Shown here piece after piece: positions 6,304 through 45,000 of a stretch of 64,000 nt of DNA; position 1 is the stretch's first letter, and every line of letters begins with the position of its first letter. A model generated the notes under the pieces. That model worked only from the letters and a program-made list of their open reading frames with translations, did no database searches and was not told the DNA's origin. The stretch is from sequence record PV785814.1; one strand, 5' to 3'. A program made the translations under genes and the position numbers.

Positions 6304-7230
6304 ATGAAAAGTACAATGTTTTTAAACAATATCACGTGTATCGACCATGCATGGGTTGACGATATGGGTGAAATTAATGGTAACAGCTACAATCTTTGTG
6401 CTGAGATTACCGGTGAAGTTGACGAAACTGAACAAGTCGTGATTGATTTCAGCGGCTGTAAGAAAGCAATCAAGCATCTTGTAGACGATTCTGAATTCGC
6501 TATCGACCATCGTCTAGTTATCGTCGAGGGGTTTAGTGATGCGGTGTTGTCTCAAGTTGAAGATCGTCTTCGAATGCAAGTAGACACGCCAGTTTTCCAC
6601 GCAGTGTCTACAGTAAACGACTGGTATCAAGTCATCAAACCTAGCGAACTGATTGAAACAGACTTCAGAATCCCTAGCGATTCGCTGTACATGTCATATG
6701 TTGCTGAGTATCTTGAAGATATGCTACTTGAGCAGCTACGCAAGCAAGGTTATCCTGTTACACACGTCGCTGTAGAGCTTTCAGAGTCGTTTGACTTACC
6801 ATCATGGGCAAACAGTCACGTTGAATTCAATTACGCTCACGGGCTGCGTTCAAGCACTTCTTACGGGTGTCAGAATATCGCACACGGTCACCGTTCGTTC
6901 ATTGCAGTAGATCAGCACTTGAACAGCAAAGGTCGCAAGGTACTGAAGCGCATTGCCAAAGAAATGAGCGGCTATATTGCTTGGTCAGACAACATTCGCA
7001 AAGAAGATGAAGTGTCATACAAGTCACAGCGCGGTAACTTCTACATGCGTCACGAAAACATGATCGTGATACCAACTGAAACTACAGTTGAAAATCTCGC
7101 AAACTACATTGCAACGACATACGAAGAAGAATTCCAACGAATGGGTGTTCAGCGTGTGTGGGTTTCAGAGGGTCTATCAAAAGGCTCAGTCGTTGACATC
7201 AAAATCAACAAAGAATTGCTCTATAAGTAA
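6304..7230 (+). CDS. queD: QueD-like 6-carboxytetrahydropterin synthase (long two-domain form)
   Basis: CIDHA..GNSY..VVIDFS..K..K..VD..IDHR N-domain and a second HGL..GCQNIAHGHRS domain; adjacent to folE. Confidence 0.75.
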   Translation: MKSTMFLNNITCIDHAWVDDMGEINGNSYNLCAEITGEVDETEQVVIDFSGCKKAIKHLVDDSEFAIDHRLVIVEGFSDAVLSQVEDRLRMQVDTPVFHAVSTVNDWYQVIKPSELIETDFRIPSDSLYMSYVAEYLEDMLLEQLRKQGYPVTHVAVELSESFDLPSWANSHVEFNYAHGLRSSTSYGCQNIAHGHRSFIAVDQHLNSKGRKVLKRIAKEMSGYIAWSDNIRKEDEVSYKSQRGNFYMRHENMIVIPTETTVENLANYIATTYEEEFQRMGVQRVWVSEGLSKGSVVDIKINKELLYK

Positions 7231-7297
7231 TCAACAATAATTGTTTAGTAGCACGTCTCGGCGTGCTATTATTGTTTTCTATCAATGAGGAAATAGA

Positions 7298-7966
7298 ATG
7301 TTAGACAAAAATAAAGTAGATCCTATCCTAGGACAAAAAGTTGAAGCGCATCTTCGCAAAATCGGAATGCACACGCCGACTGTTGAAAACGGTCTAACTG
7401 ATGATGAAAAGAAAGCGATTCTTGAAGATCGATTTACTGACATCATGCAAGCTCTTGGTCTTGACTTGTCAGACGATTCGCTAGTCGATACGCCAAAGCG
7501 TTGGGCTAAGATGATGGTAAACGAGCTTATGAGCGGTCTATCGCCAGATATGTTCCCAAAATGTACGGCAGTAGACAACAAAATGAACTACGACCAGATG
7601 GTTTGTGAAAAAGGCATTACTGTTCTTTCACAATGTGAACATCACATCGTAACAATCGACGGGTTTGCAACGGTTGCATACATCCCGAAGAACAAAGTTC
7701 TTGGTCTTTCTAAGATGAATCGCATTGTTGAGTACTTCGCTCGACGCCCGCAGATTCAAGAGCGTTTGACTGTTCAAATCGCTGAAGCACTGAAGTTCAT
7801 TCTTGAAACTGAAGATGTTGCAGTGTTGATCGACGCCAAACACTACTGCGTGAAAGCACGCGGTGTTGAAGATAACAACTCAAGCACAGTGACTAGCCAC
7901 TTATCTGGTGCTTTCCGCAACGAACCAGAGGCTCGCGCTGAGTTTATGTCACTTGCACGAGGGTAA
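7298..7966 (+). CDS. folE: GTP cyclohydrolase I
   Basis: DTPKRWAKM, SQCEHH, GLSKMNRIVEYFARRPQIQERLT, HYCVKARG. Confidence 0.97.
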   Translation: MLDKNKVDPILGQKVEAHLRKIGMHTPTVENGLTDDEKKAILEDRFTDIMQALGLDLSDDSLVDTPKRWAKMMVNELMSGLSPDMFPKCTAVDNKMNYDQMVCEKGITVLSQCEHHIVTIDGFATVAYIPKNKVLGLSKMNRIVEYFARRPQIQERLTVQIAEALKFILETEDVAVLIDAKHYCVKARGVEDNNSSTVTSHLSGAFRNEPEARAEFMSLARG

Positions 7967-7969
7967 TTG

Positions 7970-9346
7970 ATGATCATTGAATACGTTATGTCTGCGACGG
8001 GTCATGCTCGTCTTGGTGCAGCACATAAACTAATGGACGTGGTTGACACGTCCTATTTGCGTAAAATTCTAGACGCAGCACAAGACCTCGATGGTGTTCA
8101 CAAAATCAGTATGCTGTACAACGCATATACTGAGAAGAAAGTCGGTCATCAAATCAATGATTTGTTCGGTGATTCTGTGTACAAAGTACACGTCGATTCT
8201 GGCGGTCTTCAGATTGTCAACCTAGGTTTAGACAACACACCAGAGCTTCGTAAAGCTGTTTACGAGAATCAAGCAGAGTCTGGTGACATTGGTATGTGTT
8301 TCGATGAAATCCCGTTGCACAATGAAGCAAAAGGCGGTGGCGCTGCTCGTATCAACACGAAAGATAAAGTTTTCATGTATGATCTAGCGTACAAGTACGG
8401 TGTCAAGACTGGCAAGAACATTCGCGCACAGATTGAGACGTATATCGCAACTGAAAGCAAGTGCAAGCCGTATATCATCTTACAAGGCAACTCAGACGAT
8501 GACTTCAAAGCATTCAGTGACGGCATTATGTCGCAACTCGAAGGCGTTGAAGAGTACATTGCTGGTTGTGCTGCTGCCGATACATGTATTGGTAATGGCG
8601 TACGTGAATCAATCGACATGATGAGCGTTATACCAAAGCTCAACATACCAGAACAAGCAAAGAAATCAGTTCACATGCTTGGGGTTGGGTCTGTTAAACG
8701 TCTATTGCCCGCTGTAGCTCTTATTAGAAGCGGTTATTTCGGTGATGAATTTCATATTAGCTATGACTCATCAACACACACGGGTTGTTTAACCAACCGT
8801 GAATACACAGATAAGCTCGGTCGTCGTAAGAAAATCTCAGGTCATGGTATCTTCAAAGATGGTAAGAAATTGCCTTCTCGTGAACTTGATGAAATGCTCG
8901 ACGAAGTATGGGGTCGATTCGGTGCTGTGTTACCTCGTGACAAAGAAGAGTTCAAAGATTTCGCAACACGCTTGTGGTTGAAAGAACTCGACAAAGAAAC
9001 GATGACAAATGAAGATATTGTGTTTGAAGTTGCATGTAATTTGTGTATAATCTTATCTCAAGTTAACAACTTCCAAGCGATTATCTCTGAAACGTTTGAC
9101 TTGAACACGCCAAAAGCTGCTGACTTGTCAGCGTTCTTCGGTGGTTCAGTTGAGACTAAAGAGCCGCAAGAGGGTTTCAAGAAGTGGTCAGCGATTCGTC
9201 GCCTTGATGTTCTTGATAAACTGTTAGACGTGAACACAGTCGAAGCGTATGATCGCTGGCACAGTAGCTACGTTGACAGACTACCGTCTATGCGCATTCG
9301 TCGCGGTACAACTGCTGAATTCCCAGCTTTCAAAGAACAAGAATAG
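7970..9346 (+). CDS. TGT-superfamily guanine transglycosylase (DpdA-like candidate)
   Basis: VDSGGLQ, CFDEIP, IILQGN, HMLGVGS, SYDSST correspond to TGT catalytic motifs; no canonical CxCxxC Zn motif seen; embedded in the que cluster. Confidence 0.75.
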   Translation: MIIEYVMSATGHARLGAAHKLMDVVDTSYLRKILDAAQDLDGVHKISMLYNAYTEKKVGHQINDLFGDSVYKVHVDSGGLQIVNLGLDNTPELRKAVYENQAESGDIGMCFDEIPLHNEAKGGGAARINTKDKVFMYDLAYKYGVKTGKNIRAQIETYIATESKCKPYIILQGNSDDDFKAFSDGIMSQLEGVEEYIAGCAAADTCIGNGVRESIDMMSVIPKLNIPEQAKKSVHMLGVGSVKRLLPAVALIRSGYFGDEFHISYDSSTHTGCLTNREYTDKLGRRKKISGHGIFKDGKKLPSRELDEMLDEVWGRFGAVLPRDKEEFKDFATRLWLKELDKETMTNEDIVFEVACNLCIILSQVNNFQAIISETFDLNTPKAADLSAFFGGSVETKEPQEGFKKWSAIRRLDVLDKLLDVNTVEAYDRWHSSYVDRLPSMRIRRGTTAEFPAFKEQE

Positions 9347-9375
9347 CGCCCTCGGGCGCTCTTTATGAGGTATAC

Positions 9376-10284
9376 ATGAGCAATTACGATCAAGTTTCAG
9401 CTATTGCTGCTGAACACTTAGGTAAAAAAGCAGGCGATTACAGTGATTTCGTCAACATTGTAAGCATTCGACCTGACTTACTCGTACCAATCCCACGCGA
9501 GTTAAACCGAACTGATTACGGCATTACTAACAGCGACTTTGCAGGGTTTGATACTTGGCACGGCTTTGAAGTTTCATCACTGACTGAACAAGGTCTACCA
9601 GTATCTGGTATGGCGAAAGTCGTGTATCCGAGTGATTCACCGAACATCGTTGAAAGTAAGTCAATGAAACTATACTGGAACAGCTTCAACATGGCTAAAA
9701 TCGGTGATAATCGCGCTGAAGTAGCACGAGCAATCGAAGTTATTGCAGCACGCGATTTGACAAACATCATCGGTGCACCTGTTCAAGTGAGTTTCTTCAC
9801 TGAAAAGCTAACTCAACCGCATGGTATGACTGGCTTCGCAGAGCTTGACAAATACGTATCTGAAGAGACTGTTTTCGACTCTGAAAGCGGCGCTGATACT
9901 GATTTGCTGCAAGAATCGCACATCAAGCGTTTGAAAGTATTCACACCTAATCTACGCTCGAACTGTCGCGTTACGCATCAACCAGACTTCGGTGATTTGT
10001 ACGTGTACATGAGCGGTGAGAAGACCCCGACTGTAGATAGCTTAATGCAATACATCGTGTCTTTCCGCAAAGAGAATCATTTCCACGAAGAATGTGTCGA
10101 AATGATTTACAAAGCGTTACTTGATAAGTTCAACCCAACTGAGCTTATGGTAACTGCACTATACACACGTCGCGGTGGTTGGAATATCTGCCCTGCACGT
10201 GCAACGCACGAAGAGCTATTACCTGAAGCACTAGGTAGTAAATCTGTCTCGCACACTAACGGAAGCTGTTTATTCCGTCAGTAA
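9376..10284 (+). CDS. queF: NADPH-dependent preQ0 reductase, bimodular type
   Basis: ESKSMKLYWNSF QueF motif, SNCRVTHQPD (catalytic Cys/Asp), ENHFHEECVE, YTRRGG. Confidence 0.93.
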   Translation: MSNYDQVSAIAAEHLGKKAGDYSDFVNIVSIRPDLLVPIPRELNRTDYGITNSDFAGFDTWHGFEVSSLTEQGLPVSGMAKVVYPSDSPNIVESKSMKLYWNSFNMAKIGDNRAEVARAIEVIAARDLTNIIGAPVQVSFFTEKLTQPHGMTGFAELDKYVSEETVFDSESGADTDLLQESHIKRLKVFTPNLRSNCRVTHQPDFGDLYVYMSGEKTPTVDSLMQYIVSFRKENHFHEECVEMIYKALLDKFNPTELMVTALYTRRGGWNICPARATHEELLPEALGSKSVSHTNGSCLFRQ

Positions 10285-10338
10285 TAAGAGCTATAATGAG
10301 TGTTCAATAGTGAGCACTCATATACTTGAGAGGTTAAA

Positions 10339-11055
10339 ATGAAAGTAGTATCTGTTCTAAGTGGTGGTCTTGACTCTACCATTCTTACATATTCACTAGT
10401 AGATCAATTTGGCAAAGACAATGTGTTTGCATTATCGTTCTACTACGGTCAAAAGCAGTCGATTGAGCTAGAAAAAGCGAAGTTGACTTGTCAAAAGCTC
10501 GGTATCGAGCATCGTCTAATCGACATTTCATTCTTAGGTGAAGTTGTTGCTCCTGTTTGTGCGAATATCAAAGGCACTGATGTTGCAATGCCGACTATTC
10601 AAGACGTTCTAGGCGACCCTCAGCCACCAACTGAAGTCCCATATCGTAACATGCTATTGAATACAATCGCGTTCTCGTTTGCTCAAGCGAATGGTTGTGC
10701 TGCGGTGTTTACTGGCATTCAAGTGCATGATGCATATGGCTATTGGGATTGCACACAAGACTTTCTTGATGGTATGAACCAAATCTCGTCACTGAATCGC
10801 CAACATGAAATCTCACTATGTGCACCGTTTGCTCAGATGTCAAAAGCTGAAGAAATCGCTATCGGTATAGAGCTTGGCGTGCCGTTCGAAGATAGCTTAA
10901 CTTGCTATGACCCGAACGAAGCGGGTGAAAGCTGTGGTGTATGTCCGTCATGTGCTGAACGCATCATGAACTTCGGCAAAGCGGGTATCAAAGACCCTGC
11001 ACCGTACTCGAAAGACATCCCGTGGGATCAAGTGTTTGCTAAGGCAGGTCATTAA
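10339..11055 (+). CDS. queC: 7-cyano-7-deazaguanine synthase
   Basis: SGGLDST PP-loop, YGQK, VPYRN, YWDC, C..CGVCPSC Zn motif. Confidence 0.95.
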   Translation: MKVVSVLSGGLDSTILTYSLVDQFGKDNVFALSFYYGQKQSIELEKAKLTCQKLGIEHRLIDISFLGEVVAPVCANIKGTDVAMPTIQDVLGDPQPPTEVPYRNMLLNTIAFSFAQANGCAAVFTGIQVHDAYGYWDCTQDFLDGMNQISSLNRQHEISLCAPFAQMSKAEEIAIGIELGVPFEDSLTCYDPNEAGESCGVCPSCAERIMNFGKAGIKDPAPYSKDIPWDQVFAKAGH

Positions 11056-11663
11056 TGTGTGGATTATTTGCTGCTAGAAGCAAGCAAGAGCTTATTGAAC
11101 TGTCAAAAAGCAATATCCATCGTGGTTCTCGTACTCACTCTGTGAGTACGTTTAAGAACGGTCGTGTGACAATTCATAAGTTCACGGGTGCATTCGACCC
11201 GACTAATGTGCCAGACAGTGCAGATTTCTATATCTGTCACGTTCAAGCACCAACTGGTACTAGTGCGCAAGCACACCCAGCGATTGTAACAGTCGAAGAG
11301 AACGGTCAGTTACACGACTCACACGTGTGGCATAATGGCATTCTCAAAGATCATTACATGAAAAAGCAGACTCAAACTTGGGATACTGCACACATTGCTG
11401 AAGCTATTTGCTACAACAAACTAAGCGAACTTGATGGTACGTTTGCATGTTTTCACTTCATTAACGGCAGTTTGCGTGTGTTTCGCAATGAAATCAGCCC
11501 GTTATTCATGAATGAAGACGGTACAGCATTCAGTAGCACAAGAACTATTCTAACGCCTGATCATGTTGAGCCGAATAAATTGTTTAACATCGACTTGAAG
11601 ACGTTTAGAATGTCTCTAGTAAGCGAGTTCAAGACTCGCGAAAATCCATATTTCTTTATGTAA
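11055..11663 (+). CDS. Class II (Ntn) glutamine amidotransferase, stand-alone
   Basis: N-terminal MCGLF nucleophile, HRG, WHNGIL, DGTFA, RNEISPL; coupled to queC by TAATG overlap. Confidence 0.8.
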   Translation: MCGLFAARSKQELIELSKSNIHRGSRTHSVSTFKNGRVTIHKFTGAFDPTNVPDSADFYICHVQAPTGTSAQAHPAIVTVEENGQLHDSHVWHNGILKDHYMKKQTQTWDTAHIAEAICYNKLSELDGTFACFHFINGSLRVFRNEISPLFMNEDGTAFSSTRTILTPDHVEPNKLFNIDLKTFRMSLVSEFKTRENPYFFM

Positions 11664-31535: not shown

Positions 31536-32158
31536 ATGAATATCAATCTGCTAATTCGTAATGAAGTAAAGAACAACACGAGTCGTTACGCTACTGTCTA
31601 TGACATCATGGACGATATGCTTGCTAAGTTCCCTCAAGCGCGTGCTAGTGCATCAAGCAATGATGGTACAATGAAGAACAGCACATTAAGACGTGAAATC
31701 TCACGTGCGCTTGATAGTTCTACTAACTGGAAAGCAATCGGCAAGACTGATTCAGGTCGTAAGCTGTATGAACGCTTACCAAACGGCAACTCACTAGAGC
31801 AATTCGTATGAAAGCATATCGCATTAAAAAAGCAATAGATGATCTTGACATTGAACAATATGATCTGTTTGTGCAGAGTCCATTCCATGATGAAGACTTC
31901 TTTATGTCACGCAGACCAGAACGACCACCAATGTGTCATGCGCTGATTATTCAGTTCTTAGACTTGTACGATGAGCTAGACGTATCTGAAGACGAAATAC
32001 CAGAACTCATGACACACTGGCACACTCAAGCAGAAACAAATATCAAATCGCTTGGGATGTTTCGTAAGTCACTGCTAGAACAGAAACACTCGATTGAAGA
32101 TCAGATACATCAAACTGAAATAACAATCGAGAAACTACAAAAGGTATTCAAACAATGA
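31536..32158 (+). CDS. Two hypothetical proteins (31536-31811; 31808-32158)
   Basis: GAGG RBS, ATGA overlap. Confidence 0.7.
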
Positions 32159-32778
32159 CAGGCTACCCATTAGTACATAAAATGCAAGCAGTCGTACGCT
32201 CATGCCAAACCGTTGACCAACTGCTTAACGCTAGAAAGTATCTGTTACAGTGTGACAAATTCGCTGCAACTGCTGAAGATGGTCGCGGTTGGTTAGTTGT
32301 GACTGAAGCAGTTGACGAACTCGATGCTATTATCACTGATAAGCTGTGTGAAATTAGTAACGTGCGTGGTATGCGTGCTGTTGACACTGGCGTTATCAAA
32401 CTCGGCATTGACATTCATGGCGTAATAGACAAAGCACCAGAACTTTTCACGCTCATTAGTAAGCTACCAGTTGAAGTGCATATCATCACTGGCATTAAAG
32501 AAGAACTTGACACTGACGTACCTAGTGATTTAGAATACGACTACTGGTTCAGCATTCATGAGCAATGTGAAATCGACGGCGTTGAAATCACATACGATGA
32601 ACAGAACAGACCTCACGTTGATCCAGACATCTGGGACAATATGAAAGCACGCTATTGCAAAGAGCAAGGCATTACTATGCTGATTGATGACTCACCGCAT
32701 TACGCTAGTACTTTCGAAGGTCTTGATACATTGTATCTTCAACTAACTAACACTAAACGCAATGAGTGGCGCAAATGA
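32155..32778 (+). CDS. Protein with C-terminal HAD-like domain
   Basis: LGIDIHGVID, HIITG, MLIDDS motifs. Confidence 0.6.
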   Translation: MTGYPLVHKMQAVVRSCQTVDQLLNARKYLLQCDKFAATAEDGRGWLVVTEAVDELDAIITDKLCEISNVRGMRAVDTGVIKLGIDIHGVIDKAPELFTLISKLPVEVHIITGIKEELDTDVPSDLEYDYWFSIHEQCEIDGVEITYDEQNRPHVDPDIWDNMKARYCKEQGITMLIDDSPHYASTFEGLDTLYLQLTNTKRNEWRK

Positions 32779-35045
32779 ACGTAGCAAATGTAATGAAAGA
32801 ACACGCAGCTATCCAAAACGCATTGATGGATTATCTCGATGCTGAATTCGACGGCGAAGGTCATATCGAATATGCAGAGTACTTCGAACAAGACGAAGCA
32901 TGGGACGTGACATACTACGATGGTGAGTTCCTTCGTGAACTAACTGTAACAGCAACTGCACTTGAGCAATGGATGAACAAATGATCGAAAGCACAATGGC
33001 TAATCATGAGCTAATCATGAACGCAATTGAGAAGTTCTTGTGCTTGAACTCTGTCCAATACACTGATGCCATTCAATATGATAAAGACAATCTCGGCTTC
33101 GATGTCGCGATTGTCGAAGAATCCGAGAATGGCACTGAATACACAGACGTGTTCATCCATAACTATCAACTAGAAAAGTACCTATGAATATTAACGATGT
33201 AATGCTTCACCACGAGAAGATTACTGACGCATTGCATAGCGTTATTAAGCAAAGGACTGCTAATCGAATCGTGTCTATCACATATGATAAAGATCGCTAT
33301 CTGTTTAAGATTGTACTCAGTGCATCTAATAGCTTAGACGATAGCGCCTTTGAATGGAGTATGTGCGTGACCAACGAAGCGATAGAAAACCAAATCTATG
33401 CGGAGACATTCACATGCAATTACCAGAATACTTGAGCCACATTACTGTAAAAGAAAACGTAATCACTATCGACTCAGCACGAGATAAAGTACTCGTTGTT
33501 GACTATCTCACTAATGCAAAAGCTAAGTTCCATATTGTCCAAAAGACAGTTAGCCGTTGCGAAATCCATGTTAAACGTCTAGGGTAATACAATGACAGAA
33601 CCAACACTGACTAACTGGAACGAGCTTAAAGACCAAAGCTTAGTGTATCGTATCAATAACGAAATACTACACCCACTCGGCTATGCTGTTGTACTCAATA
33701 CCGAAACAGGCACAAGTGACCGAGTACTAATCGCCGATGAGTTTAAATTCTCTGGCGAAGTACACGACAAACATAAAGATAATGTCACCATGACTGGACT
33801 ACTCGCGACTCATAAAGTAGTAGAACAACAAATCGCTAGTAAGTTCGGACTGAAAGACATATGGCATAATCTAGTAGACTGTACCGATAAAGTGTTCGTA
33901 TCCGATAACTCAGATTTAGAAAAAGCATATGAGTTCCAATACGCAGATACAGAAAACGAAATCACTGAAGGCGATTGCTACTCAATAGAAGTATACGGCA
34001 CATCGGTATGGATATCTGATGACGAACAATACTTATTAACTGCTTGTAACGACGGCTGTGGCAATAGAGATATGTATCTCTTCGCGCTAAAGAATCTATC
34101 TAATGTAGAAATGTATTAGAAACTTAAAGAAAAGGGTTGCATTGTGCAGCCCTTTCGCGTATCATACACATATCAAATCAAGAAAGGAAAACATTATGAT
34201 TGGTCTATCTATTATAATACTCGTGTTCGTCGCAATCTTAGCGTTCGACTCAGTTGAAAGCATCATGAGCAACGAATACCGAACTGGCATCTGCATCTTC
34301 CTTGTCATATGCGCTGTCGTTAACGTAGCTAACATGTTTGTTATGCACAAATACGGAGTAATGCTATGAGCTTAACAATACTTCTACTCATACTCGTATG
34401 CTGTGTAGTACTAACAGCTATCTGTTTGTTCAGCTTCATCAACAAACCTGGCTTTGTTAAACTAATACTCACTGCTGTACTCGGCTTTATCTCATATGTG
34501 CTATTACACATCACGGCTGGTGCATTATGAGCGTGCTATTAATGTTCTTAATCGTTATCGCATGTGCCTGTGTCGTAGTAGCTCTATTCTGTTTTATCAT
34601 ATGCCTATTCGATGATAACGAATCAGACTCAGACAATGACAATAAAAGTGGTAGCTCATTCGCTACTAGAGAATCAATGAACACGTGTATTCGTGTAATG
34701 CAATCAATGTGAGAATACTATGACTCAAACACAAATACAAACAATCCGTGCAGTCTGTATCGACAATCAATCTCATCGTATAGACAAACCAGAACCACCT
34801 AGCGGCTTGACATTCGGCAAAGAATACATTGTCCACATGTATAACGTAAACGAACATACAAACAAACCACCTATGATTCGTATCACTAACGACGACAATA
34901 AACGCGCTAGTTATGTCGCTGCTCGTTTCAAACTGATTGTATGAATATACTAAACGAAATACCAACTAATTACATTATGCTTCTGCTATGCGTTCTAGCA
35001 GGCGTAGCTGGATGGTGCCTGAGCGATATATCAAAGCATGACTAA
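32775..35045 (+). CDS. Block of small hypothetical ORFs, including three tandem paralogs (32775-32984, 32981-33187, 33184-33435), 33592-34119 and several small membrane proteins (34196-34369 onward)
   Basis: Overlapping junctions; shared M..H..I..A...L N-termini in the paralogs. Confidence 0.65.
34131..34198 (+). promoter_or_regulatory. Terminator-hairpin/early-promoter composite element, copy 2
   Basis: AAAGGGTTGCA-TTG-TGCAGCCCTTT; TTGCAT-17-TATCAT. Confidence 0.85.
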
Positions 35046-35136
35046 AATCGCTTAGAATGCGATTCAGTGCGTCTCAGAGCATGGTACGTTATTGATTAAA
35101 ACTGATATATCGCACCATGCCTCGTTTAAAAGCACA

Positions 35137-35244
35137 TGTGCATAAATCTGTGGATAAGATGTGTGTAAAACTGTGCATAAGTTATTAAAATTGTGGATAA
35201 AATACAGATTTTCGTGTGGATAAGTCTGTGGATTACGTGGATAA
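35137..35244 (-). promoter_or_regulatory. Array of eight co-oriented DnaA-box matches (candidate origin or DnaA-binding locus)
   Basis: + strand TGTGCATAA 35137, TGTGGATAA 35149, TGTGTAAAA 35162, TGTGCATAA 35172, TGTGGATAA 35192, TGTGGATAA 35215, TGTGGATTA 35227, CGTGGATAA 35236; six fit TT(A/T)TNCACA exactly, two have one mismatch. Confidence 0.8.
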
Positions 35245-35352
35245 GTTTTTGGCGTCAAAAATGGGTGATGTCTCATCGGCTCCTGTGTAGTAAGATGTAG
35301 TCGAGAAAGGTACTTGCCTCGTGAAAATCTAATCCGCTTCGCATCTTTTCGC

Positions 35353-35382
35353 TTGACATGCAATGCCATCCTGTGAGAGAAT
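35353..35382 (+). promoter_or_regulatory. Promoter downstream of the DnaA-box array
   Basis: TTGACA-18-GAGAAT, followed by GGGAGG RBS and ATG 35418. Confidence 0.55.
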
Positions 35383-35417
35383 GAGAAGCCAACTGAACCA
35401 CCTTGGGAGGGTGTGAT

Positions 35418-38400
35418 ATGATTACATTAGCGTTGTTCTACATGAGCCGCGACATGAATTACAGTGAGCGACCAAGTGATTTGTATCTTGGTACGTGTAT
35501 TTTAGACTTCGCCATGATTATAGTGGCGTTCTGTGGTATGATGATGTTTACGGGAAATTGGTAATGATTAGTATTGAGTTACACAAGAAAGTAGTAGAGA
35601 AGAAAGCAGTATTGCCAGATCATGCAATGGTGAGAATCGAGACGTATTACCGTTCGTTGAGTGGTTATATGAACTTCATTGATTCGAGTCATCACATTCG
35701 TGGTGTTACTGATGGTTCATATATGCTAGTTACTGAAGATGGTGCTTTCTTTCACATAGAGAAAGACCGTGTAAATGGTGATAAGCAGACGAAAGAAAAG
35801 CACGATGGTCAGCTTGTAGCGGTACATGCGCGATTAGCTTTGCCTGCGAAAGATTGGGATTGGTATCCGTGTAAGTGGAAAAGCGGTCGTCTTGTCTATA
35901 CGTATAAAGAGCAAGATTTCGTTGAAGAGCATCACGAGCTAGTGGTTGGTGAGATAGTTGATATTTTTGCCGATGACGATGAGTATGCCGAAGCGCCAAA
36001 TGAAGCGACTGTGGTGTTGAGTCGTCCGGGACAAATTGTGGTAGAGAGTGATGGTGTGTTAATTGCTTTCAACATTGACAATATGCGTTCGACTGGTAAT
36101 ATCGTATCTGACTGTGGTGAACATTTACTAGTGGGTAAGTTTGCCGTAAGCGAATACGACGAAGAACTTCATTCGTAAAAAGATTAAGAAAAGGGTTGCG
36201 CTATGCAGCCCTTTCTTGTATTATCTCTATATCGAAACGACATCGACTAACAGAGAGAGAATATTATGTTTAACGCAGCTACAGTACTGAATCAGCTTAC
36301 ACAATCTAAACACGGTCATTCACGTCTTGTTGCCATGACTGGTGCTAAGAACTTGCTTCAATCGCCAGAAAATAGATTCGTTTCTTTTCGTCTGCCTAAA
36401 GCAGTACGCGGTATTAACTACGTGAAAATCACGTTGAACAGCCAAGACTTGTATGATGTTGAGTTTGGTAAAGTCTCGAACAAAGCTTGTCCAGAAATGA
36501 AAAAGCTTGGTATTAAAGTGATGTTGCCTAGTTACGAAGTGAAAACACTAGTAGAAGGCGTGTACAATGACTCATTGAAAGCATGTTTCGAGCGTGAAAC
36601 TACACTTTTATTGTCACTTTAAGCAAAAAGTGCTTGACTGTTCCACCAGCATAGCCGATAATAGCTACATCAAGACAAGAGAGAGAACATTATGACTTAC
36701 ACTGAAGCTAAAGCAATCGCGCCTGTTGAACTAATCATGTCAATCACTGAAGATCAGTTCTACGACATTATTGCAGAATCAAACGCTGCTGGCGATTTCG
36801 CGTTCACTGCTCAAGTTATGAAAGTTCAATCTGACCTCCGTCGCGCACGTAAAATCAATTACTAAGGAAAATATTATGACTGTATTCAATTCTGAGCTAG
36901 AAGCATTCGCAAAAGACCACAATCTAGACCAATCTGCACTTGAAGAACTAGCAGATGGTGTAATGCGCCGTGTTCAATATGCAGTATCTAACGGTCATAT
37001 TATGACTGAAGAGCTAATCATTCAAGCGACGCAGCATTGGTTTTTGTCTCGTGAAAAGCTGTTTAACGACTATCTTGGTAATGTTAACGGCACACGTGAC
37101 AAGCTGAACAGCGAAGTTTACGACTTACTAAAGGGGAAATAAGATGAATTTATTCGCGCAAGTCGCTAGTGAGCTACTAGAAGACGAAGAGCTAATGTCT
37201 AGCGTTGAGCGTTATACGTGTCATATGATGGAAGATCGCATGGCAGTTATTGCTCCGCATATCCCGTTTTTCGACGTTGAATCGTACATCGTCAATAAAG
37301 GTCGTGAGTTTCTACACGCCATTAACAACAATCCAGACTTGCTTGGTTATGAACTAAGCACAGCGTCGAAAGAGTCGCTTGCTGATTCTATTCGCGACAA
37401 TTGGGCTGGTGCGTTCGTGCATGTGCTGTCATACGATGAAAACTGTCGTCGTGATATGAACGCTTTTACGCTATGTCGTAAAGCATGGTTGAAATTTATC
37501 GTGGATGCGAATGATGAAATATCTCTATGAGATTCAACAAGCGGTTCGTGAACTGCTAGAAGACGAGTCTATTTTGACTGACAAGACTCGCTATACTTGC
37601 AATGAAATCGCCACTGGCGTAGTTGCTAGAGCATGTGAATTTGATGCATCATATCGTATTGCCATTCGAATAGCGGTTAAAAACACGTTATCTGAAATCG
37701 GTGGTCGATTTGTAAACTCGGTTTATGCCAAAGCTAAAGCTGGTGATATTCAGTTATCAGAAATTGCCATGATTAAAATTGGCAATGACATGAAAATCGA
37801 CTATTATCGTGGTACGTTTATTCATGACATTGCACGTATTGGCGAGAAAGAATACGACTTGGAGTTATTTGCCGAGTATCGTCGCCAGTGGTTGGAGTTC
37901 ATTTTGACTCAATCTAGTGAGCATGAGAACCGCAGAAATGCTTAGTCTTGACGAACGTCTTGCCATGCTTGACGATATACTAAGCGAGAAAACGCCAGAT
38001 GAGATACTAGCTGAATTGCAATCGTATCCCGCCATTGGCCCAACTGTAGAGGAATTCACGAAGGATTTTCCTATGACATTACAAAAACAAATCAAAGCTG
38101 CTGCTGAACAAGTACTGGCTGAATCGAAAACTGACATTACAGCGTTGGACGATTTCACTTGTTGCCAGATTGCAAACATCGTAGACAATGACGAACTTGA
38201 TTTCGAAGTGCTTAATTCAGTGTACAAGTCTCTAGAAGATCTCAAAGTACCATTCTTGGATACGCTTGACATCCCGACTAAAGACAAAGAAGCTGCACGC
38301 CATTTATCTGCGTTCTTGAGTTTTCTTACTTTCGACCATCATGAATTGCGTGAATATCGCATAGAATGGCTAGAGTTTATCATCGCCAATATCGAGGGTA

Positions 38401-41400
38401 TCAAATGACATTAGCTGAATTAGCAGTAGACCATCCGTATTACTGTAGCGATTCGAACTATTACAGCAATGATGCTGGTATGGTCTATGACACAATGAAA
38501 GAGTTTTTAGACGAGTTCGAAGACGCCGACGTTGATATGAACTTGGTTTTTCGCTGGGATGTCAAGCCAGATTTATCAGATGAAGATTACGAAACACCGC
38601 TTGGTACGTACTACGCTGAGATCTTTATGATGCATCAACGTAAAGGTATTTTCGCGCCGTTTCATATTCGGTCTATTACAGAAGAAGACGTACCGCGTTT
38701 TGTCGCATACTTGAAACCCCATCAACAAACGTTACAACAACTTTGGAAACCGCTATGATTATTCTCAATATACTAGCGTTTTATATGCTGGTGGCAGTGG
38801 GTGCTTATTTGTATGTTGCACTAGGCGATTACATTTGGTACAAAATGAAAGGCAAGCTTGACAACAAGTTTCCGATCAACTCGATTGAAACGCACAAATT
38901 CATTGCAGTAATGAGTTTATTCTGGTTGCCACTTGTGCTAATCTTCTTGAAAAACTCAGTGAAGGGGCTTTATGAAAGACTATAGTCGCGCCGTTATCGT
39001 AGTCAACTACAAGAGCGGTAATTCAGTTGCGTTTTGGACGTATCGTTTTTCGTATTCACCACAGTCAGTAACTTGGCATGCAGCGGTGAATCCGTACGAC
39101 GAAAAAGAGAGTAATGCACTACGTGAGCGATTAGCACTGATGCGCATTGCATTGTTAGAAGACCCAGTTAAACTCGCAACCGAAATCAACGACATTGAAA
39201 GCGTATGGGTTGCAGAGCGTTATCTAGGTGAAGAAGGGGAAATACCAGAAGATGAGTGATTTACTAGCGGGTATTGTTGGCGGCATTGTGATTATTTTCA
39301 TGGCAATTGTTGGTCTGATTTGGTCAATTATTGAGTTCGTCATCGGTATTCTTGTATTAATCGGGGCGGTTATTGTCGGCGTATGTGCGACTGTACTAGG
39401 TGCAGCTATTGTAACGATAGCATGGCCTTTTGTAGAAGCTAAGAAAGCATACGACGCGCATCAAAAACGCAAGAATGAAAAGCTTTAATTTTTCATTACC
39501 AGTCAAGGTCGAGCACAAATCTCTTGTGCTTGATCTTTGTCGCTGCTCAGTTTGCCATGTTGACTTCGCTGTTTCTGACTGCATAGAAGACTACGGTCAT
39601 CATGACGGTTGGGAAATGCCTGCCTATACTGAACTACTTTGTCCCAAGTGTGAGTGTGGCGGTTGTATTGAAGATTTCTGGCCAAGCGATAAAGCAGTTT
39701 TAGAACATGGCGAATATCTGCAAGAGCACAAGCCGATGGAATTCGACCAATTTCGAAAGTGCTTTCATGACGTATACAAGGTGAAATAATGATTTATCGT
39801 TTCTGGGAAACACCAACTGGCGACTGCCTTATTGAAATGGTCGATGAACACTATAATATGGGCAAGCGTGCTTACATGACAGATATGATGGATTTCTATC
39901 GTACTGAACAAGGCAAACATGCTTTACTGAAACACGTTCACGGTTGGGGTACTGTTGAACTTGCTGATTTTGATATTCGCGAGTTAAAAGGTCTTGGCAC
40001 TGTCGAACTCGAAGAGCTTACTTTAACAGCCAATGACAAGTCGGTATTGAGTCGTTGCATTGATAAAGAAGAATTCGACTACGCTATGCTTTACTACAGC
40101 GATTACCAAAGCGTATGTCACAACGTCGTTGAATCACGCGAGTTTCATGCACTACGTAATAATCTAGTCAATGCTCATCGTGACTTACAGACTTGGTTGA
40201 AATTACAAGGTGTAGACGTTGAATAAGATGTATGCCATACGTCCGTGTCTAAATGGCTTTCTATGGAAAGTCGTTATTTTCGCGAACAACTACGAGCGTG
40301 GTACAGTCTCGTATCATTTCACCAGAGCAGGCGCATATAACTTGTGTAGACAATTAAACGAGGACAGACAATGAGCCAAATGGAATACAATAAAGGCATT
40401 CTACATCTTGTGGATAAGTTTGTGGATAAACTTGCTGAAGAACTAGTAAGTGATTCTGACTTGCCGCATTGGTGTGAGACCAAGCTTGAATATCTACGGG
40501 AAAACTCAGAAGAGTTCGGGTTGGTTTTCATCAAAGACCGTTGTTACCGTGTAACGTTTGAAAACGAGCGTGAAGATCTGTATCAGATTGCCAGAGCCGA
40601 CGTTCAGCCGAATGGTGATATTCACTTTGAGACGTATCATTATAATGGTGGTGCTCATTGGACTGAAGTTGTAGAGGGTGCGTTATGAGAACGGTCGAAC
40701 ATGTGCAAGTTGTATCTGGTGATGAAGCGGGTTATGCTACTGTAACAGAAGATGGTGGTTTTGCTCGTGAGTACAAGTCGCTGACTGAAGTTCTCGTTTC
40801 TACGGATTCGTATTACACTGATGCGTATTACTTCGTGAACAAAGACAATGCCGAGCGTTTCATGGAGAATCTCAATGAATGATCTAGTAGGCAATGAAAT
40901 CACCGCGGGTATGGAAGTCGTAGTGATGACACGTGCATTTGGTTTAACTCGTAGTCATATGCGTCTTTACACAGCTACGGTGATTTCAGTTAAGCGTGGT
41001 CGAGCATTGGTGCGTTGTCATGACACCAAGCATGAAACGACCGTTCGTAAAACTAACATCATTGTTCCGAAAGACAGTTCTGAAAACGCTATGCTTAAAG
41101 AAGCTCTTGGTAATACGCTTGAGTACATCGAGCAGCTAGAGAACAGTGCCGGTCGCATGGACGTTCTTGATGTGATTCACGACGATCTACCGAGTGACAT
41201 TGGTGATTGGGACTTTCAAGAGTACGTGAGGTTAAGCAATGGCTAAACGATTCTGGGCTGTGCAGTTCGAAGACGGTTCTTTTATTCATGAGAATCCCGA
41301 CTATGAACTAGGTCGAACACGTCAATTACAGCGTACAGACGACTTAGACAAGGCTAAACTCTGGCAAAAACCAGGTATGTTACAGACATACATGAAGAAA

Positions 41401-41472
41401 AACGGTCGATTTGCACCGGCAATTTGGGGTTCAGTGCTGGTGGAAGTACAAAGAGAGGTGGTAATTGGCTAA
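35418..41472 (+). CDS. Block of about 20 small hypothetical early ORFs (e.g. 35418-35564, 35564-36178, 36266-36622, 36693-36864, 36876-37142, three paralogs 37144-38408, 38405-38758, through 41239-41472)
   Basis: Dense + strand ORFs with overlapping junctions; no family confidently recognised. Confidence 0.65.
36190..36268 (+). promoter_or_regulatory. Terminator-hairpin/early-promoter composite element, copy 3
   Basis: AAAGGGTTGC-GCTAT-GCAGCCCTTT; TATTAT; ATCGAAACGA; AGAGAGAATATTATG. Confidence 0.85.
36634..36695 (+). promoter_or_regulatory. Early promoter and conserved leader
   Basis: TTGACT-17-GATAAT-AGCTACATCAAGACA..GAGAGAACATTATG. Confidence 0.75.
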
Positions 41473-42049
41473 ACTGTACTACAACTATTCCGCTATGAAT
41501 GCGGGAAAAAGCGCACAGCTATTGCAAGCTGCTCATAACTATGAACAGACTGGTTCTACTGTGTGGTATTTTAACTACTATCAAGACAACCGTTTTGGTG
41601 GTGTTGGGAAAATCTCTAGCCGTATTGGCTTAGAGCATGACGCTGTATTGTTCAGTGAAGAGTTCGATTTCATTCATTACGCTATGCATGAGAATCACGT
41701 GCCAGCGGCTATTTTCGTTGATGAATGTCAGTTCTTGACCCAAAAACAAGTGCTAGACCTAGCTTATATCGTCGATAAATTCAATATTCCAGTGCTTTGT
41801 TACGGTATACGTAATGATTACATGGGTAATTTATTCCAAGGTTCTGCTGCGTTGATGTGTCATGCCGACGAGATTCGCGAAATCAAAGCTATGTGCTCAG
41901 TTGATGGTTGTCATAAGAAAGCAACTCATATCGGGTTATTCATTGGCGGAACTCGTGTGCTTGATGGTGAACAGACATATATTGGTGATACTGATTACCG
42001 TAGTATGTGTCGTAAACATTTTATAGAGGGAATTGATGGTACTAGCTAA
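41465..42049 (+). CDS. tk: Thymidine kinase
   Basis: YSAMNAGKS, IFVDECQFL, LCYGIRNDY, LF.GS, C..C Zn motif, Y.SMCRKHF; TTG start. Confidence 0.95.
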   Translation: MAKLYYNYSAMNAGKSAQLLQAAHNYEQTGSTVWYFNYYQDNRFGGVGKISSRIGLEHDAVLFSEEFDFIHYAMHENHVPAAIFVDECQFLTQKQVLDLAYIVDKFNIPVLCYGIRNDYMGNLFQGSAALMCHADEIREIKAMCSVDGCHKKATHIGLFIGGTRVLDGEQTYIGDTDYRSMCRKHFIEGIDGTS

Positions 42050-45000
42050 TTTACTATGTACGTTGATTGCTGCATACATTGGCAATTACATTGGTCGTTA
42101 TCTGACAGTACAGAGTGGTACATACAGAGGTCGTGATCCGTTTGCGTTTCGTAACATGAATCACTTTGTGAATATCGTCGTTGCATTTCTCGTATGCGCG
42201 TTAACGGGTGGGTTATGAGTCATATACAAGATTTAGAAGCACAGATTCGCGAACTTGAGCGTGAGCTGAAAGAAGAGCGAAGTCGTTGTCACCATACTCG
42301 GGTGACTTACAAGAACGGGGCTGCTGATGGTGATCCGTGGTCTAGAGATCAGTACTGGCGAGATATTGAATGTCTTGATTGTGGGTTTAAATCTCATATT
42401 GACAGCGACATCAACCCAACTGACTATAACTTTCGCGGTGCATTAGGTTCTGTCTTACACGTGCCTAATGAGAAATACGCGGTTTATGTTGAAGTGAAAA
42501 AACTAATTGAGGAATCAGATGAAATACGCACGCTATATTGAGTTCAATGACAACGAAGGTGAAACGTGGCATCGTTTTATCCCAATGACCGATCCGTGTC
42601 TAGACAAGTTTCTAGATGTAATGAAGCTCGTTGAAGATTCAGACGACACGTATTCAATTGAAATAGACCGTGAAGGCAAGGTTGTTCAGTACGATGAATC
42701 ATACGTGAAAGTGCTAGTTGACGAATCGGCTATGTACATGAACGGTTACATGGATGCATATGCCGTGTGCAACATCAACGAAGACATTTTCAAATACGTA
42801 GGTGACTATGAAGAAGCTTACGAAACACTATACAAAATGGGGTGGGCGAAATGAGCCAAGCATTATATGACGTAGTAAAAGCGTACAACGATGAGCATGG
42901 TTATTCAAACGAGCCAGATTCAATGTATGAAACGTTCATTGAATGTCTAAGCAAGCGTATTGTACAAGAAGAAAACGAGTCTGAGCATCGTTGGTATGAC
43001 ATTCGTTCGGTTGTACATGCTGTTGACATCGACGGAACAGAGCGTTACTTCCAGACGTTTGATTATCACATTACTGGTGATAACTGTGCAAGTGACATGG
43101 ATTTAGACATGCCGACGCTTGATGATGTGACAGAAGTACACCCACATCAAGTAACAATGACTGTTTACAAGTAATGAAAGCCCCTTAATTGGGGCTTTTT
43201 TAGGTCTGAAGAAAATTATTTTAATTTTTTTGCAAAAAGTGGTTGCGTGGTGAATGGTAATTGCCTATTATAGCTACATCGAAACGAGATACACATTCTT
43301 AAACGACTATAGAGAGACGACATTATGCCTAGCAACCTAAACAACATCAAAATCAAAGACATTCGCGAATTCGGTATCAGCACTGTTGAGTACAAAGATT
43401 TCACAATCTTCGCTACTGAAGAGCTTGGTGAGATTATCCTACGCGCTGCTGTATGTTACGACGCAGACTCTGACGCTCACGTATCAGTAGTTGACGTATG
43501 TGGTGACACTCTGAAAGAAGCGAAAGCTTACTTGCAAGCTGAATTGAACGACATCAAACACACTGCTGGTCAAATCGCTGAAATGGCAATTGCACTAGAT
43601 GACTTTGTTGGTCAATACGAAGTGCTAGTTGAGAAGTTCAACAAGCCAGTAGCAGTAGCTGCGCCAGTTGTTGAGACTAAGCCAGAGCCTAAAGCTGAGA
43701 AGAAAACAAACGCTCGTGGTCAAGCTGCACGTGACTTAGTAGCCGAGAAAGCAACTGAACTTCTTGGTCTAACTGAGATTACATTCGAGCAGCGTGGCAA
43801 ATACAAAGACTGGTACATCATGGGTACTGACGCTGAAGGTGAAGCATTCGAGCAACGTCTAGACGTATTCAAGAAGAAACTAGTAGTAATGGGCGCACTA
43901 TGATTATCACTAAAAGCAGAGTCGTGTACGACCGATATGAACTAACATGCGCTAACGACTTATTAGAGCATGTTAGTGAAGTCCGACGCTACGACGACGA
44001 ACTTGACTTGTATCACGATAGCGGTAAGCCAGGTATTCTAACTCGACTTGCCACTATCAAACTCAAAGACGTTGGTGAGGTTCAATCTATCGACGCTCTA
44101 GAGCATTTCAAAGACAACTATGAACGGTATTGGGAGGTTCTAAATGGCTGATTTAATCGCGGGTGTTGTGTATATCGTAGTTCTAATCGGTATTGTTATC
44201 TACTGTGTATACGATGAGATTCGCAATAACAAAGATAAGCCGATGAAAGGCGATGATGCAAGTAGCATTTTTATAATAGCAGTTGCATGGCCAGTTATCG
44301 CAATGCTTCTTCTAAGTGCGGGTATGGCTCATGGTATTGAGAAGTCGTTTACCTACGTTGTCAACAAGCTAAAGGGATTGTAATGGTTAATCAAATTAGA
44401 CGCATCAATGGCAACGATTTTCTAGTGACCTCTCATCGTGACAACAAGTGTGAAGTACAAAAGCTTTCACATACTGAATTGGTAGTTGACACGTACGACG
44501 AAACAGAACTAGAATCATTCGAACTTATTACAACATTATCGGACACATTCTAATGCAACCAATAGACGTAAGAGACAGACTGCCAGAACGAGACGGCACT
44601 TATCTGTGCATTCGATACGGTATGCCGTATATGCCAGAAGCGATTGAGTTCTTTATTGACTGCGACGACATCGGTGTTTGGTCAGATGAGATTCTTTGCA
44701 GACAAGGTGGCGGTGGTGTTAAGCCTTACAATCAATTGTCTAACGCTGAGAAATACTGGCGAACCAATTACGGTAAAGTGATTTACTGGTTTGAAGTCCC
44801 TGAGAATCACATGAGCAGCAACGATTTCAAAGACTACATGCTTGCTGAACTATGCAGTCGCGGTATTGATCCGGATGAAGTCACTGGTACATGGGATAGA
44901 GTAGAAGCACACGGAGAAACAACATGCACAAAATGACAGTACACGTATGTGACTATTGCGACTTTCAAAGCATTCTAGAGCGTGAAGTCGCAGCACACGA

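Follow-up and report, generated by a model that had tools for sequence, protein, structure and literature searches.

A sharp local strand asymmetry at a conserved non-coding module of Vibrio phage QD01 suggests a candidate T4-type replication start

The early genes of Vibrio phage QD01 lie almost entirely on one strand, and within this co-oriented block the base composition of that strand flips abruptly at a single, short non-coding module. QD01 is a KVP40-like, T4-type member of the family Straboviridae with a genome of 248,370 bp; its isolation host is Vibrio natriegens. The stretch of DNA analysed here, referred to as the window, comprises the 64,000 nucleotides at bases 62,001-126,000 of its record, PV785814.1, and positions below are window coordinates (record coordinate minus 62,000) unless they are given as record positions. 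Comparison with relatives that possess or lack the DnaA boxes found at the module in QD01 indicates that the bias is positional, actively maintained and DnaA-independent. Our favoured reading, to which we give a probability of roughly 40%, is that the module serves as a T4-type, promoter-primed start of divergent replication, with the DnaA boxes as a lineage-specific accessory. We know of no KVP40-like phage in which a replication origin has been mapped, and the literature searched yielded no description of DnaA boxes or of a local skew jump in this group. The locus gives these phages one origin candidate with precise bounds, which can be tested cheaply. The features on which the argument turns are the following.

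32155-34944, plus strand: the left zone, ten small genes with more C than G and more A than T at synonymous sites.
35046-35417 (372 bp), no strand assigned: the unique non-coding module where the skew flips, lying between tightly packed genes.
35137-35244 (108 bp), plus strand: seven co-oriented predicted DnaA boxes, three of them perfect (TGTGGATAA) and four with one mismatch.
35353-35382, plus strand, rightward: a putative sigma-70-type early promoter, near consensus (TTGACA, 18 nt, TG-extended GAGAAT), identified by its match to the consensus.
35418-36178, plus strand: the right zone, two genes (48 and 204 amino acids) with a strong excess of G over C and of T over A at synonymous sites.
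36190-36214, plus strand: a terminator-like hairpin with an overlapping promoter-like TATTAT, which ends the strongly G-rich zone.
36201-43200, plus strand: a weaker extension of the G-rich, T-enriched domain.

The first-pass annotation had proposed, from hand counts of four 60-nt lines, that the skew inverts at the DnaA-box array without a change of coding strand. A recount of these lines returned exactly the same figures (G11/C17, G9/C16, G19/C3 and G19/C8). The flanking genes on either side of the step are all on the plus strand, so that the coding strand offers no explanation for the flip. The inversion itself stands as a local feature; farther out than about 5 kb leftward and 8 kb rightward, both flanks have more G than C. 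Against a baseline GC skew (the excess of G over C) of +0.061 for the whole co-oriented block, the regional values are -0.029 for 32,155-35,000, +0.273 for 35,001-36,200 and +0.112 for 36,201-43,200. At finer resolution, the skew is near zero or negative at about 30-35 kb and lowest at 34.7-34.9 kb (-0.28 in 200-nt windows). It lies at +0.10 to +0.30 over 35.0-35.5 kb and at +0.26 to +0.37 across most of 35.4-36.2 kb, to the right of which it stays moderately raised until about 43 kb.

This step stands out from the rest of the early region. Right-side minus left-side skew was scanned at every position of the 161-kb co-oriented block, which spans record positions 1-161,359 as a single run of nearly all plus-strand early genes, after which minus- and plus-strand blocks alternate. 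The upward step at 35,001-35,151 ranks first in the block at half-windows of 0.6, 1, 1.5, 2, 3, 5 and 10 kb (z 3.4-6.2); at a half-window of 20 kb it ranks only second, with a size of 0.036. Chance or a sampling artefact is ruled out as its source by the block-wide rank, the exact counts and the tests on third-codon-position G and C (GC3) given below. The second-largest upward step of the block, in G-C as well as in keto content (G+T against A+C), lies outside the window at record ~132.0-132.6 kb, where there is neither an annotated non-coding gap nor a DnaA cluster; KVP40 has a similar step near 132.3-132.8 kb.

Most of the step at the module is a matter of codon choice. Third-position G/C counts are 115/257 in the ten genes of the left zone and 67/36 in the two genes of the right zone (Fisher p = 6e-10), and the left block has the lowest pooled GC3 skew among all runs of six or eight consecutive open reading frames (ORFs) in the co-oriented block. 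The 48- and 204-residue genes have GC skews of +0.29 and +0.31, with third-position G/C counts of 16/10 and 51/26. When the G and C of each gene were predicted from its amino acids and genome-average codon use, 0.257 of the step of 0.332 (~77%) persisted as codon choice. Amino-acid composition, a possible cause already raised in the first-pass annotation, accounts for just 0.075 and is rejected. Four-fold degenerate sites have frequencies of A.29, C.13, G.18 and T.41 in the genome and of A.37, C.20, G.09 and T.34 in the left zone; in the right zone G is enriched and C and A are depleted (G/C 26/6). With six phages pooled, the G/(G+C) fraction is raised in seven of eight four-fold families, the T fraction in seven of eight NNY families and the G fraction in four of five NNR families, and the shift across codon families is nearly uniform.

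The axis of the asymmetry is equally specific. Purine excess (A+G) follows gene orientation genome-wide and has no step at the locus (z < 1 at half-windows of at least 2 kb), whereas keto excess has its top-ranked step there at every scale scanned, and record 100-105 kb is the highest in keto excess among all 5-kb bins. Because a keto step occurs without a purine step, the two sides must differ by opposite transitions (A versus G, C versus T). This keto-type asymmetry at synonymous sites is confined to the same interval, about 5 kb leftward and 8 kb rightward of the step. Inside a co-oriented block, strand asymmetry can thus be separated from transcription-linked purine loading, an approach that could be extended to other large phages.

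A shift of this kind could in principle arise through selection on codon choice or on the mRNA. The genes on the right would be kept poorly adapted, with G- and T-ending codons, and those on the left A- and C-ending, for the sake of expression timing or RNA stability. Codon adaptation does run along the keto/amino axis, since the preferred two-fold codons in QD01 end in C and A. In the highly expressed genes gp23, gp32 and gp22, NNC makes up 65-84% of NNY codons, NNG makes up 15-25% of NNR codons and four-fold G is.08-.09. The right zone reverses this pattern (NNC 33%, NNG 51%, four-fold G.28), and the left zone resembles it in NNG (21%) and four-fold G (.09). However, NNC in the left zone is average (57%), four-fold C is.20 against.08-.10 in adapted genes, and four-fold T is.34 against.48-.56. 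Simple codon adaptation is rejected on these grounds, the left zone being unlike the highly expressed capsid, scaffold and gp32 genes, which are low in four-fold C and high in T. In the right zone, moreover, four-fold C is lower rather than higher, and it is unclear why unrelated genes, a mobile endonuclease-like one included, should need one bias by location alone. We consider selection on codon choice or mRNA an unlikely source of the pattern.

The relatives of QD01 separate the asymmetry from both the DnaA boxes and the genes that carry it. Eleven were compared: VS2, nt-1, CZ01, phi-ST2, VH7D, ValKK3, KVP40, VH1_2019, D484, F86 and 1.081.O. All have an unannotated gap of 370-680 bp at the equivalent place, and on this gap all 11 have a GC-skew step of 0.35-0.47. 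No DnaA boxes are present at the module in KVP40, VH1_2019, D484 or 1.081.O, and five occur in F86. Over 156.6 kb of KVP40, this locus once more ranks first for both the G-C and the keto step, with no purine step accompanying it. These close relatives with and without boxes constitute a natural experiment. The skew had initially been taken as independent support for the DnaA array, an argument undone by the steps of the same size at the module in the four box-less phages; the DnaA boxes are not the source of the skew.

Nor does the bias depend on which genes are present. Identity in the shared 204-residue marker protein falls to 28-37% for D484, F86 and 1.081.O; since synonymous sites should be saturated at this divergence, the bias would have to be maintained in each lineage rather than inherited. 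At least six unrelated gene families occupy the right zone in different phages, and all are rich in G and T at third positions. They include a GIY-YIG endonuclease-like gene found in VH7D (L011:6935-7849), phi-ST2 and VH1_2019 and absent from QD01, KVP40, ValKK3 and nt-1, which always lies inside the G-rich unit and shares its bias. Because box-less relatives and unrelated right-zone genes alike display the bias, the asymmetry belongs to the position and neither to gene ancestry nor to DnaA. This bears directly on the idea that the flip is the scar of a mosaic junction, with flanks from different sources of differing composition. The surroundings would suit such an origin: the stretch is hyperplastic, and the small genes that fill it, whose functions are unknown, differ from one relative to the next. 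A relic, however, would by now have faded, and a gene inserted later would lack the bias; yet the bias persists at 28-37% marker identity and in unrelated genes at the same position. Conservation at saturating divergence, together with the bias shared by unrelated genes, rules out a relic of foreign origin, and a mosaic scar is highly improbable.

The locus is not a replichore boundary or a chromosome-style bidirectional origin. A cumulative-skew minimum had been anticipated at 35.1-35.3 kb, and none is found at window or genome scale; there is merely a small local dip of 60 counts (minimum at 34,983) within a rise of 1,812 counts across the window. Over the whole genome, cumulative G-C climbs between base 1 and base 161,371 and changes direction only along with gene orientation, and genome-scale skew tracks the direction of transcription. 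Farther out, the skew has the same sign on both sides, at +0.070 for positions 1-30,000 and +0.055 for 43,201-64,000, so that the opposite signs expected along two arms do not occur at this locus. As neither of these two defining features is present, the locus falls outside the class of oriC-type, skew-defined origins. Putative origins have been set at global skew extremes, which were noted in the same study to agree with transcription direction (PMC5107563).

Under the favoured reading, an early start would be primed from the conserved rightward early promoter, and the DNA would be repeatedly opened at the module and copied divergently. The plus strand to the right of the module and the minus strand to the left would then spend longer single-stranded, as the displaced strand of an R-loop or as lagging-strand template. 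These exposed strands would gather C>T and A>G changes, generating a G+T excess on the right and an A+C excess on the left with purine content unchanged. Since divergent exposure covers the plus strand on one side and the minus strand on the other, both zones could stem from a single cause. The imprint would fade within ~1-8 kb, and genome-scale skew would still be set by transcription direction. In T4, the first round of replication is origin-dependent and later rounds are recombination-dependent. If the same applies here, a short reach would be expected, because later rounds would have no fixed polarity. QD01 encodes the T4-type replisome and recombination set (gp43, 45, 44/62, 41, 59, 61, 32, UvsX/Y/W and Dda).

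Among known systems, the locus would work most like a T4 oriE-type locus. The T4 origin oriE contains 12-nt iterons and requires an early promoter; oriE, oriF and oriG lie at shifts of nucleotide bias, and oriF and oriG fire from R-loops (PMC3016281). In QD01, likewise a T4-type phage, evenly spaced direct repeats lie beside an early-mode promoter reading into small early genes. There are also clear differences. The repeats in QD01 are host DnaA boxes and not 12-nt phage iterons, and the likeness by direct repeats, which holds in QD01, does not extend to KVP40, VH1_2019, D484 or 1.081.O. None of the matches found for the adjacent genes of QD01 is to a T4 oriE gene. Furthermore, the bias shifts of T4 coincide with switches in the direction of transcription, and the QD01 step does not.

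Several observations weigh against a replication start at the module. Two of the five mapped T4 origins, oriA and oriC, lie outside any skew shift (PMC3016281). The rule that an origin entails a skew switch is therefore not simply transferable to this phage type. The sign of the QD01 step does fit divergent forks, for G/C as well as for A/T. An AT-rich unwinding element is not conspicuous, since the least stable 40-mers of the module, at 34,940 and 35,165, are no less stable than others in the 5 kb around them. Homologues of the downstream genes were not found outside this Vibrio phage group, so that nothing connects them with RepEA/RepEB of T4. When substitutions were polarised among QD01, VS2 and VS1, they lacked the asymmetry (98 versus 82 on the left, 19 versus 18 on the right), in a comparison of low power. 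Cytosine deamination alone does not predict the G enrichment at four-fold sites of the right zone (.28 versus.18 in the genome), which would suit selection for a G-rich non-template strand. Finally, the strongly G-rich zone stops where the transcription unit ends and not at a set distance, as would be expected of an effect tied to transcription more than of fork polarity; the following gene has baseline composition both in ValKK3, ~1.6 kb from the promoter, and in VH7D, 2.5 kb from it.

Transcription could act on its own. The module would then be an immediate-early control region, and heavy transcription or persistent R-loops of the unit at 35,390-36,190 would shape composition without a replication start. 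The non-template strand would gather C>T and A>G changes or be selected to be G-rich, and the left zone would have a separate cause, for instance antisense transcription. In every phage the G-rich zone spans the interval from the promoter to the next terminator/promoter gap and is longer when genes are inserted. The promoter is near consensus and invariant, with TTGACA and TGTGAGA unchanged in nine of nine aligned phages and a matching promoter in VH7D as well. R-loops form more readily where the non-template strand beyond a promoter is rich in G. Other near-consensus promoters in QD01, however, have no such rise, with steps of -0.13 to 0.00 (TTGACA at record 28,200, 78,266, 89,967, 107,835 and 142,955; TTAACA at record 39,262), and a general promoter-proximal rise in skew is excluded by a mean step of -0.02 at 64 intergenic gaps. 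The opposite bias on the left is also unaccounted for. A late promoter driving antisense transcription is rejected, as TATAAATA does not occur between 25,250 and 51,641, leaving no leftward late promoter within 9 kb, and the sole leftward sigma-70-like match is weak (9/12). Transcription alone is thus somewhat unlikely in our estimation. The end of the zone at the terminator/promoter gap and the G enrichment do pull toward a transcription or R-loop component alongside an origin, and the two readings can hold together, since R-loops are what initiates replication at T4 oriF and oriG.

Another possibility concerns the ends of the packaged chromosome. If packaging, or some other cut, were preferred just upstream of the promoter, invading ends would prime divergent, recombination-dependent replication and leave the same imprint. 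GenBank records of relatives from three laboratories start or end within ~40 bp of each other here, at equivalent window positions 35,311/35,312 (PVA23, PVA8 and PC-Liy1), 35,341 (R10Z and R11Z) and ~35,350 (6E35.1a). Such clustering could stem from preferred ends of the DNA itself, from a problem in assembly or from a convention passed on between records, as record starts may be taken over from a relative or set by the assembler. Among the public runs searched, none was of RNA, and the DNA runs contained nothing beyond contigs of relatives. In four of them such contigs likewise begin at 35,303-35,327, with a word depth about twofold higher to the right of the module than to the left (about 15 versus 7, 11 versus 6, and 6-7 versus 2-4). 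These runs hold mixed strains, however, and a shared right part combined with a divergent left part would also double depth, which is the likely explanation. In addition, T4-type packaging is headful and essentially sequence-independent. Non-random ends are quite unlikely to underlie the pattern. The same contigs break again at 36,666-36,682, and the V09 record begins at the end of the 204-residue gene.

A broader version of the favoured reading extends it to the whole KVP40-like (schizo-T4) group. The module would be the principal early start of these phages, and several lineages would have grafted an oriC-style host-DnaA assembly site onto a T4-type, promoter-primed origin. In a variant, the same point would also be a preferred chromosome end, from which recombination-dependent replication leaves divergently. 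We consider this extension unlikely. If true, it would provide the first origin of a T4-type lytic phage that recruits the host initiator, and kilobase-scale keto-skew jumps would become a general, sequence-only marker of such origins.

Although they do not produce the skew, the DnaA boxes are under selection in their own right. Start-to-start spacings in the array are 12, 23, 20, 23, 12 and 9 nt, and all seven positions and spacings are kept in VS2, nt-1, CZ01, phi-ST2, VH7D and ValKK3. Identity is 94% in box columns versus 75% in spacers, and nearly all variation within boxes falls at position 5, which we take to be the degenerate position of the DnaA-box consensus. The array is the sole DnaA-box cluster in the QD01 genome and coincides with the skew step; five of the nine perfect boxes of the whole genome fall within record 97.1-102.4 kb. 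On this comparative evidence the seven boxes are real, selected host-DnaA sites, at which DnaA would be expected to bind. They would be additions to the module in certain lineages, and could act as an origin accessory, in promoter control or as a DnaA sink. It is unexpected for a lytic T4-type phage to carry a selected array of sites for the host initiator, and the finding is relevant to the ways in which these phages exploit or neutralise host DnaA. Elsewhere, two perfect boxes 12 nt apart, in the orientation of the array, lie at 40409-40429 inside the gene at 40,371-40,688, and this pair is also present in VS2 (L008 14,023-14,043).

At the end of the array, three boxes are combined into a triple, TGTGGATAA, 3 nt, TGTGGATnAnGTGGATAA (box, 3 nt, box, overlapping box). 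The exact arrangement occurs in more than 120 bacterial genomes, mostly of Bacillota; in the one bacterial example examined (L054), the triple belongs to a larger cluster of boxes, beyond which the DNA is AT-rich. The arrangement may represent a conserved DnaA-assembly unit. The IMG/VR contigs that carry the triple box are not KVP40-like and have no skew step.

With bacterial oriC the QD01 array shares this triple box, seven co-oriented and selected boxes and their roughly helical spacing. It differs from oriC in lacking a genome-scale skew minimum and a dnaA/dnaN context, and no obvious unwinding element was seen; QD01 also encodes its own replisome, and the skew step persists where the boxes are absent. 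Dense consensus DnaA boxes on a multicopy element, upstream of a promoter, characterise the datA titration loci, P1 oriR and the lambda pR region, as they do QD01. The P1- and lambda-type systems are those of temperate phages or plasmids dependent on the replisome of the host, unlike QD01. As would be expected of a datA-like sink, QD01 has a cluster of boxes of high predicted affinity on a high-copy element. A likeness of pattern also exists with the skew jumps of mammalian origins and the R-loop zones of CpG islands, where a sharp local rise decays with distance and the sign switches at a promoter, as here; those systems span hundreds of kilobases, as opposed to kilobases in the phage, and the likeness is one of pattern only.

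The module contains further conserved elements, as well as one annotated gene on the opposite strand.

35049-35087, plus strand: conserved box A (CGCTTAGAAT ... TCAGAGCATGGTAC), which varies little or not at all across a nine-phage alignment and is recognisable in D484, F86 and 1.081.O.
35107-35126, plus strand: conserved box B (ATATCGCACCATGCCTCGTT), with invariant columns in a 12-phage alignment.
35245-35292, plus strand: a T-tract/A-tract followed by conserved box C (CTCATCGG..., 35272-35292), with columns conserved in nine of nine phages.
35064-35369, minus strand: annotated ORF QD01_174, lying over the DnaA array, with no PHROG or Pfam match.

Boxes A and B are separated by an AT-rich, variable spacer. 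The conserved boxes and the promoter are each present once in the QD01 genome, and no second copy of the module was found elsewhere in it. A non-coding RNA was considered and rejected, as the module has no Rfam match and no consensus fold across 12 phages (-0.31 kcal/mol). QD01_174 is probably a false gene call. Its frame of 101 codons is intact in QD01 and VS2 alone, the longest minus-strand ORF in the other relatives being 28-72 residues, and it matches no known family; its counterpart is unannotated in KVP40, nt-1, CZ01, phi-ST2, VH7D, ValKK3 and VH1_2019.

The two right-zone proteins match PHROG families of unknown function and have no Pfam match. In tblastn searches the 204-residue protein returned just 51 records, all of Vibrio phage; its predicted structure was unusable (pLDDT, the predicted confidence score, of 43), and a lookup in the Atlas gave no lead. 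The hairpin at the end of the right zone is one copy of a repeated intergenic cassette, represented here at 34131-34165 and 36190-36224, in which a hairpin (AAGGGTTGC ... GCAGCCCTT) overlaps a promoter-like TTGC.. / TAT.AT pair. About 15 copies exist in the genome, all in the early-gene block, and these two bracket the features described above. Finally, the record annotates a 7-deazaguanine (queuosine-precursor) pathway at 6304-11663, consisting of a 6-pyruvoyl-tetrahydropterin-synthase-like protein, FolE, a QueF-like protein and QueC, with QueE and a second QueC-like gene located elsewhere in the genome. This gene content suggests that QD01 DNA may contain a modified guanine.

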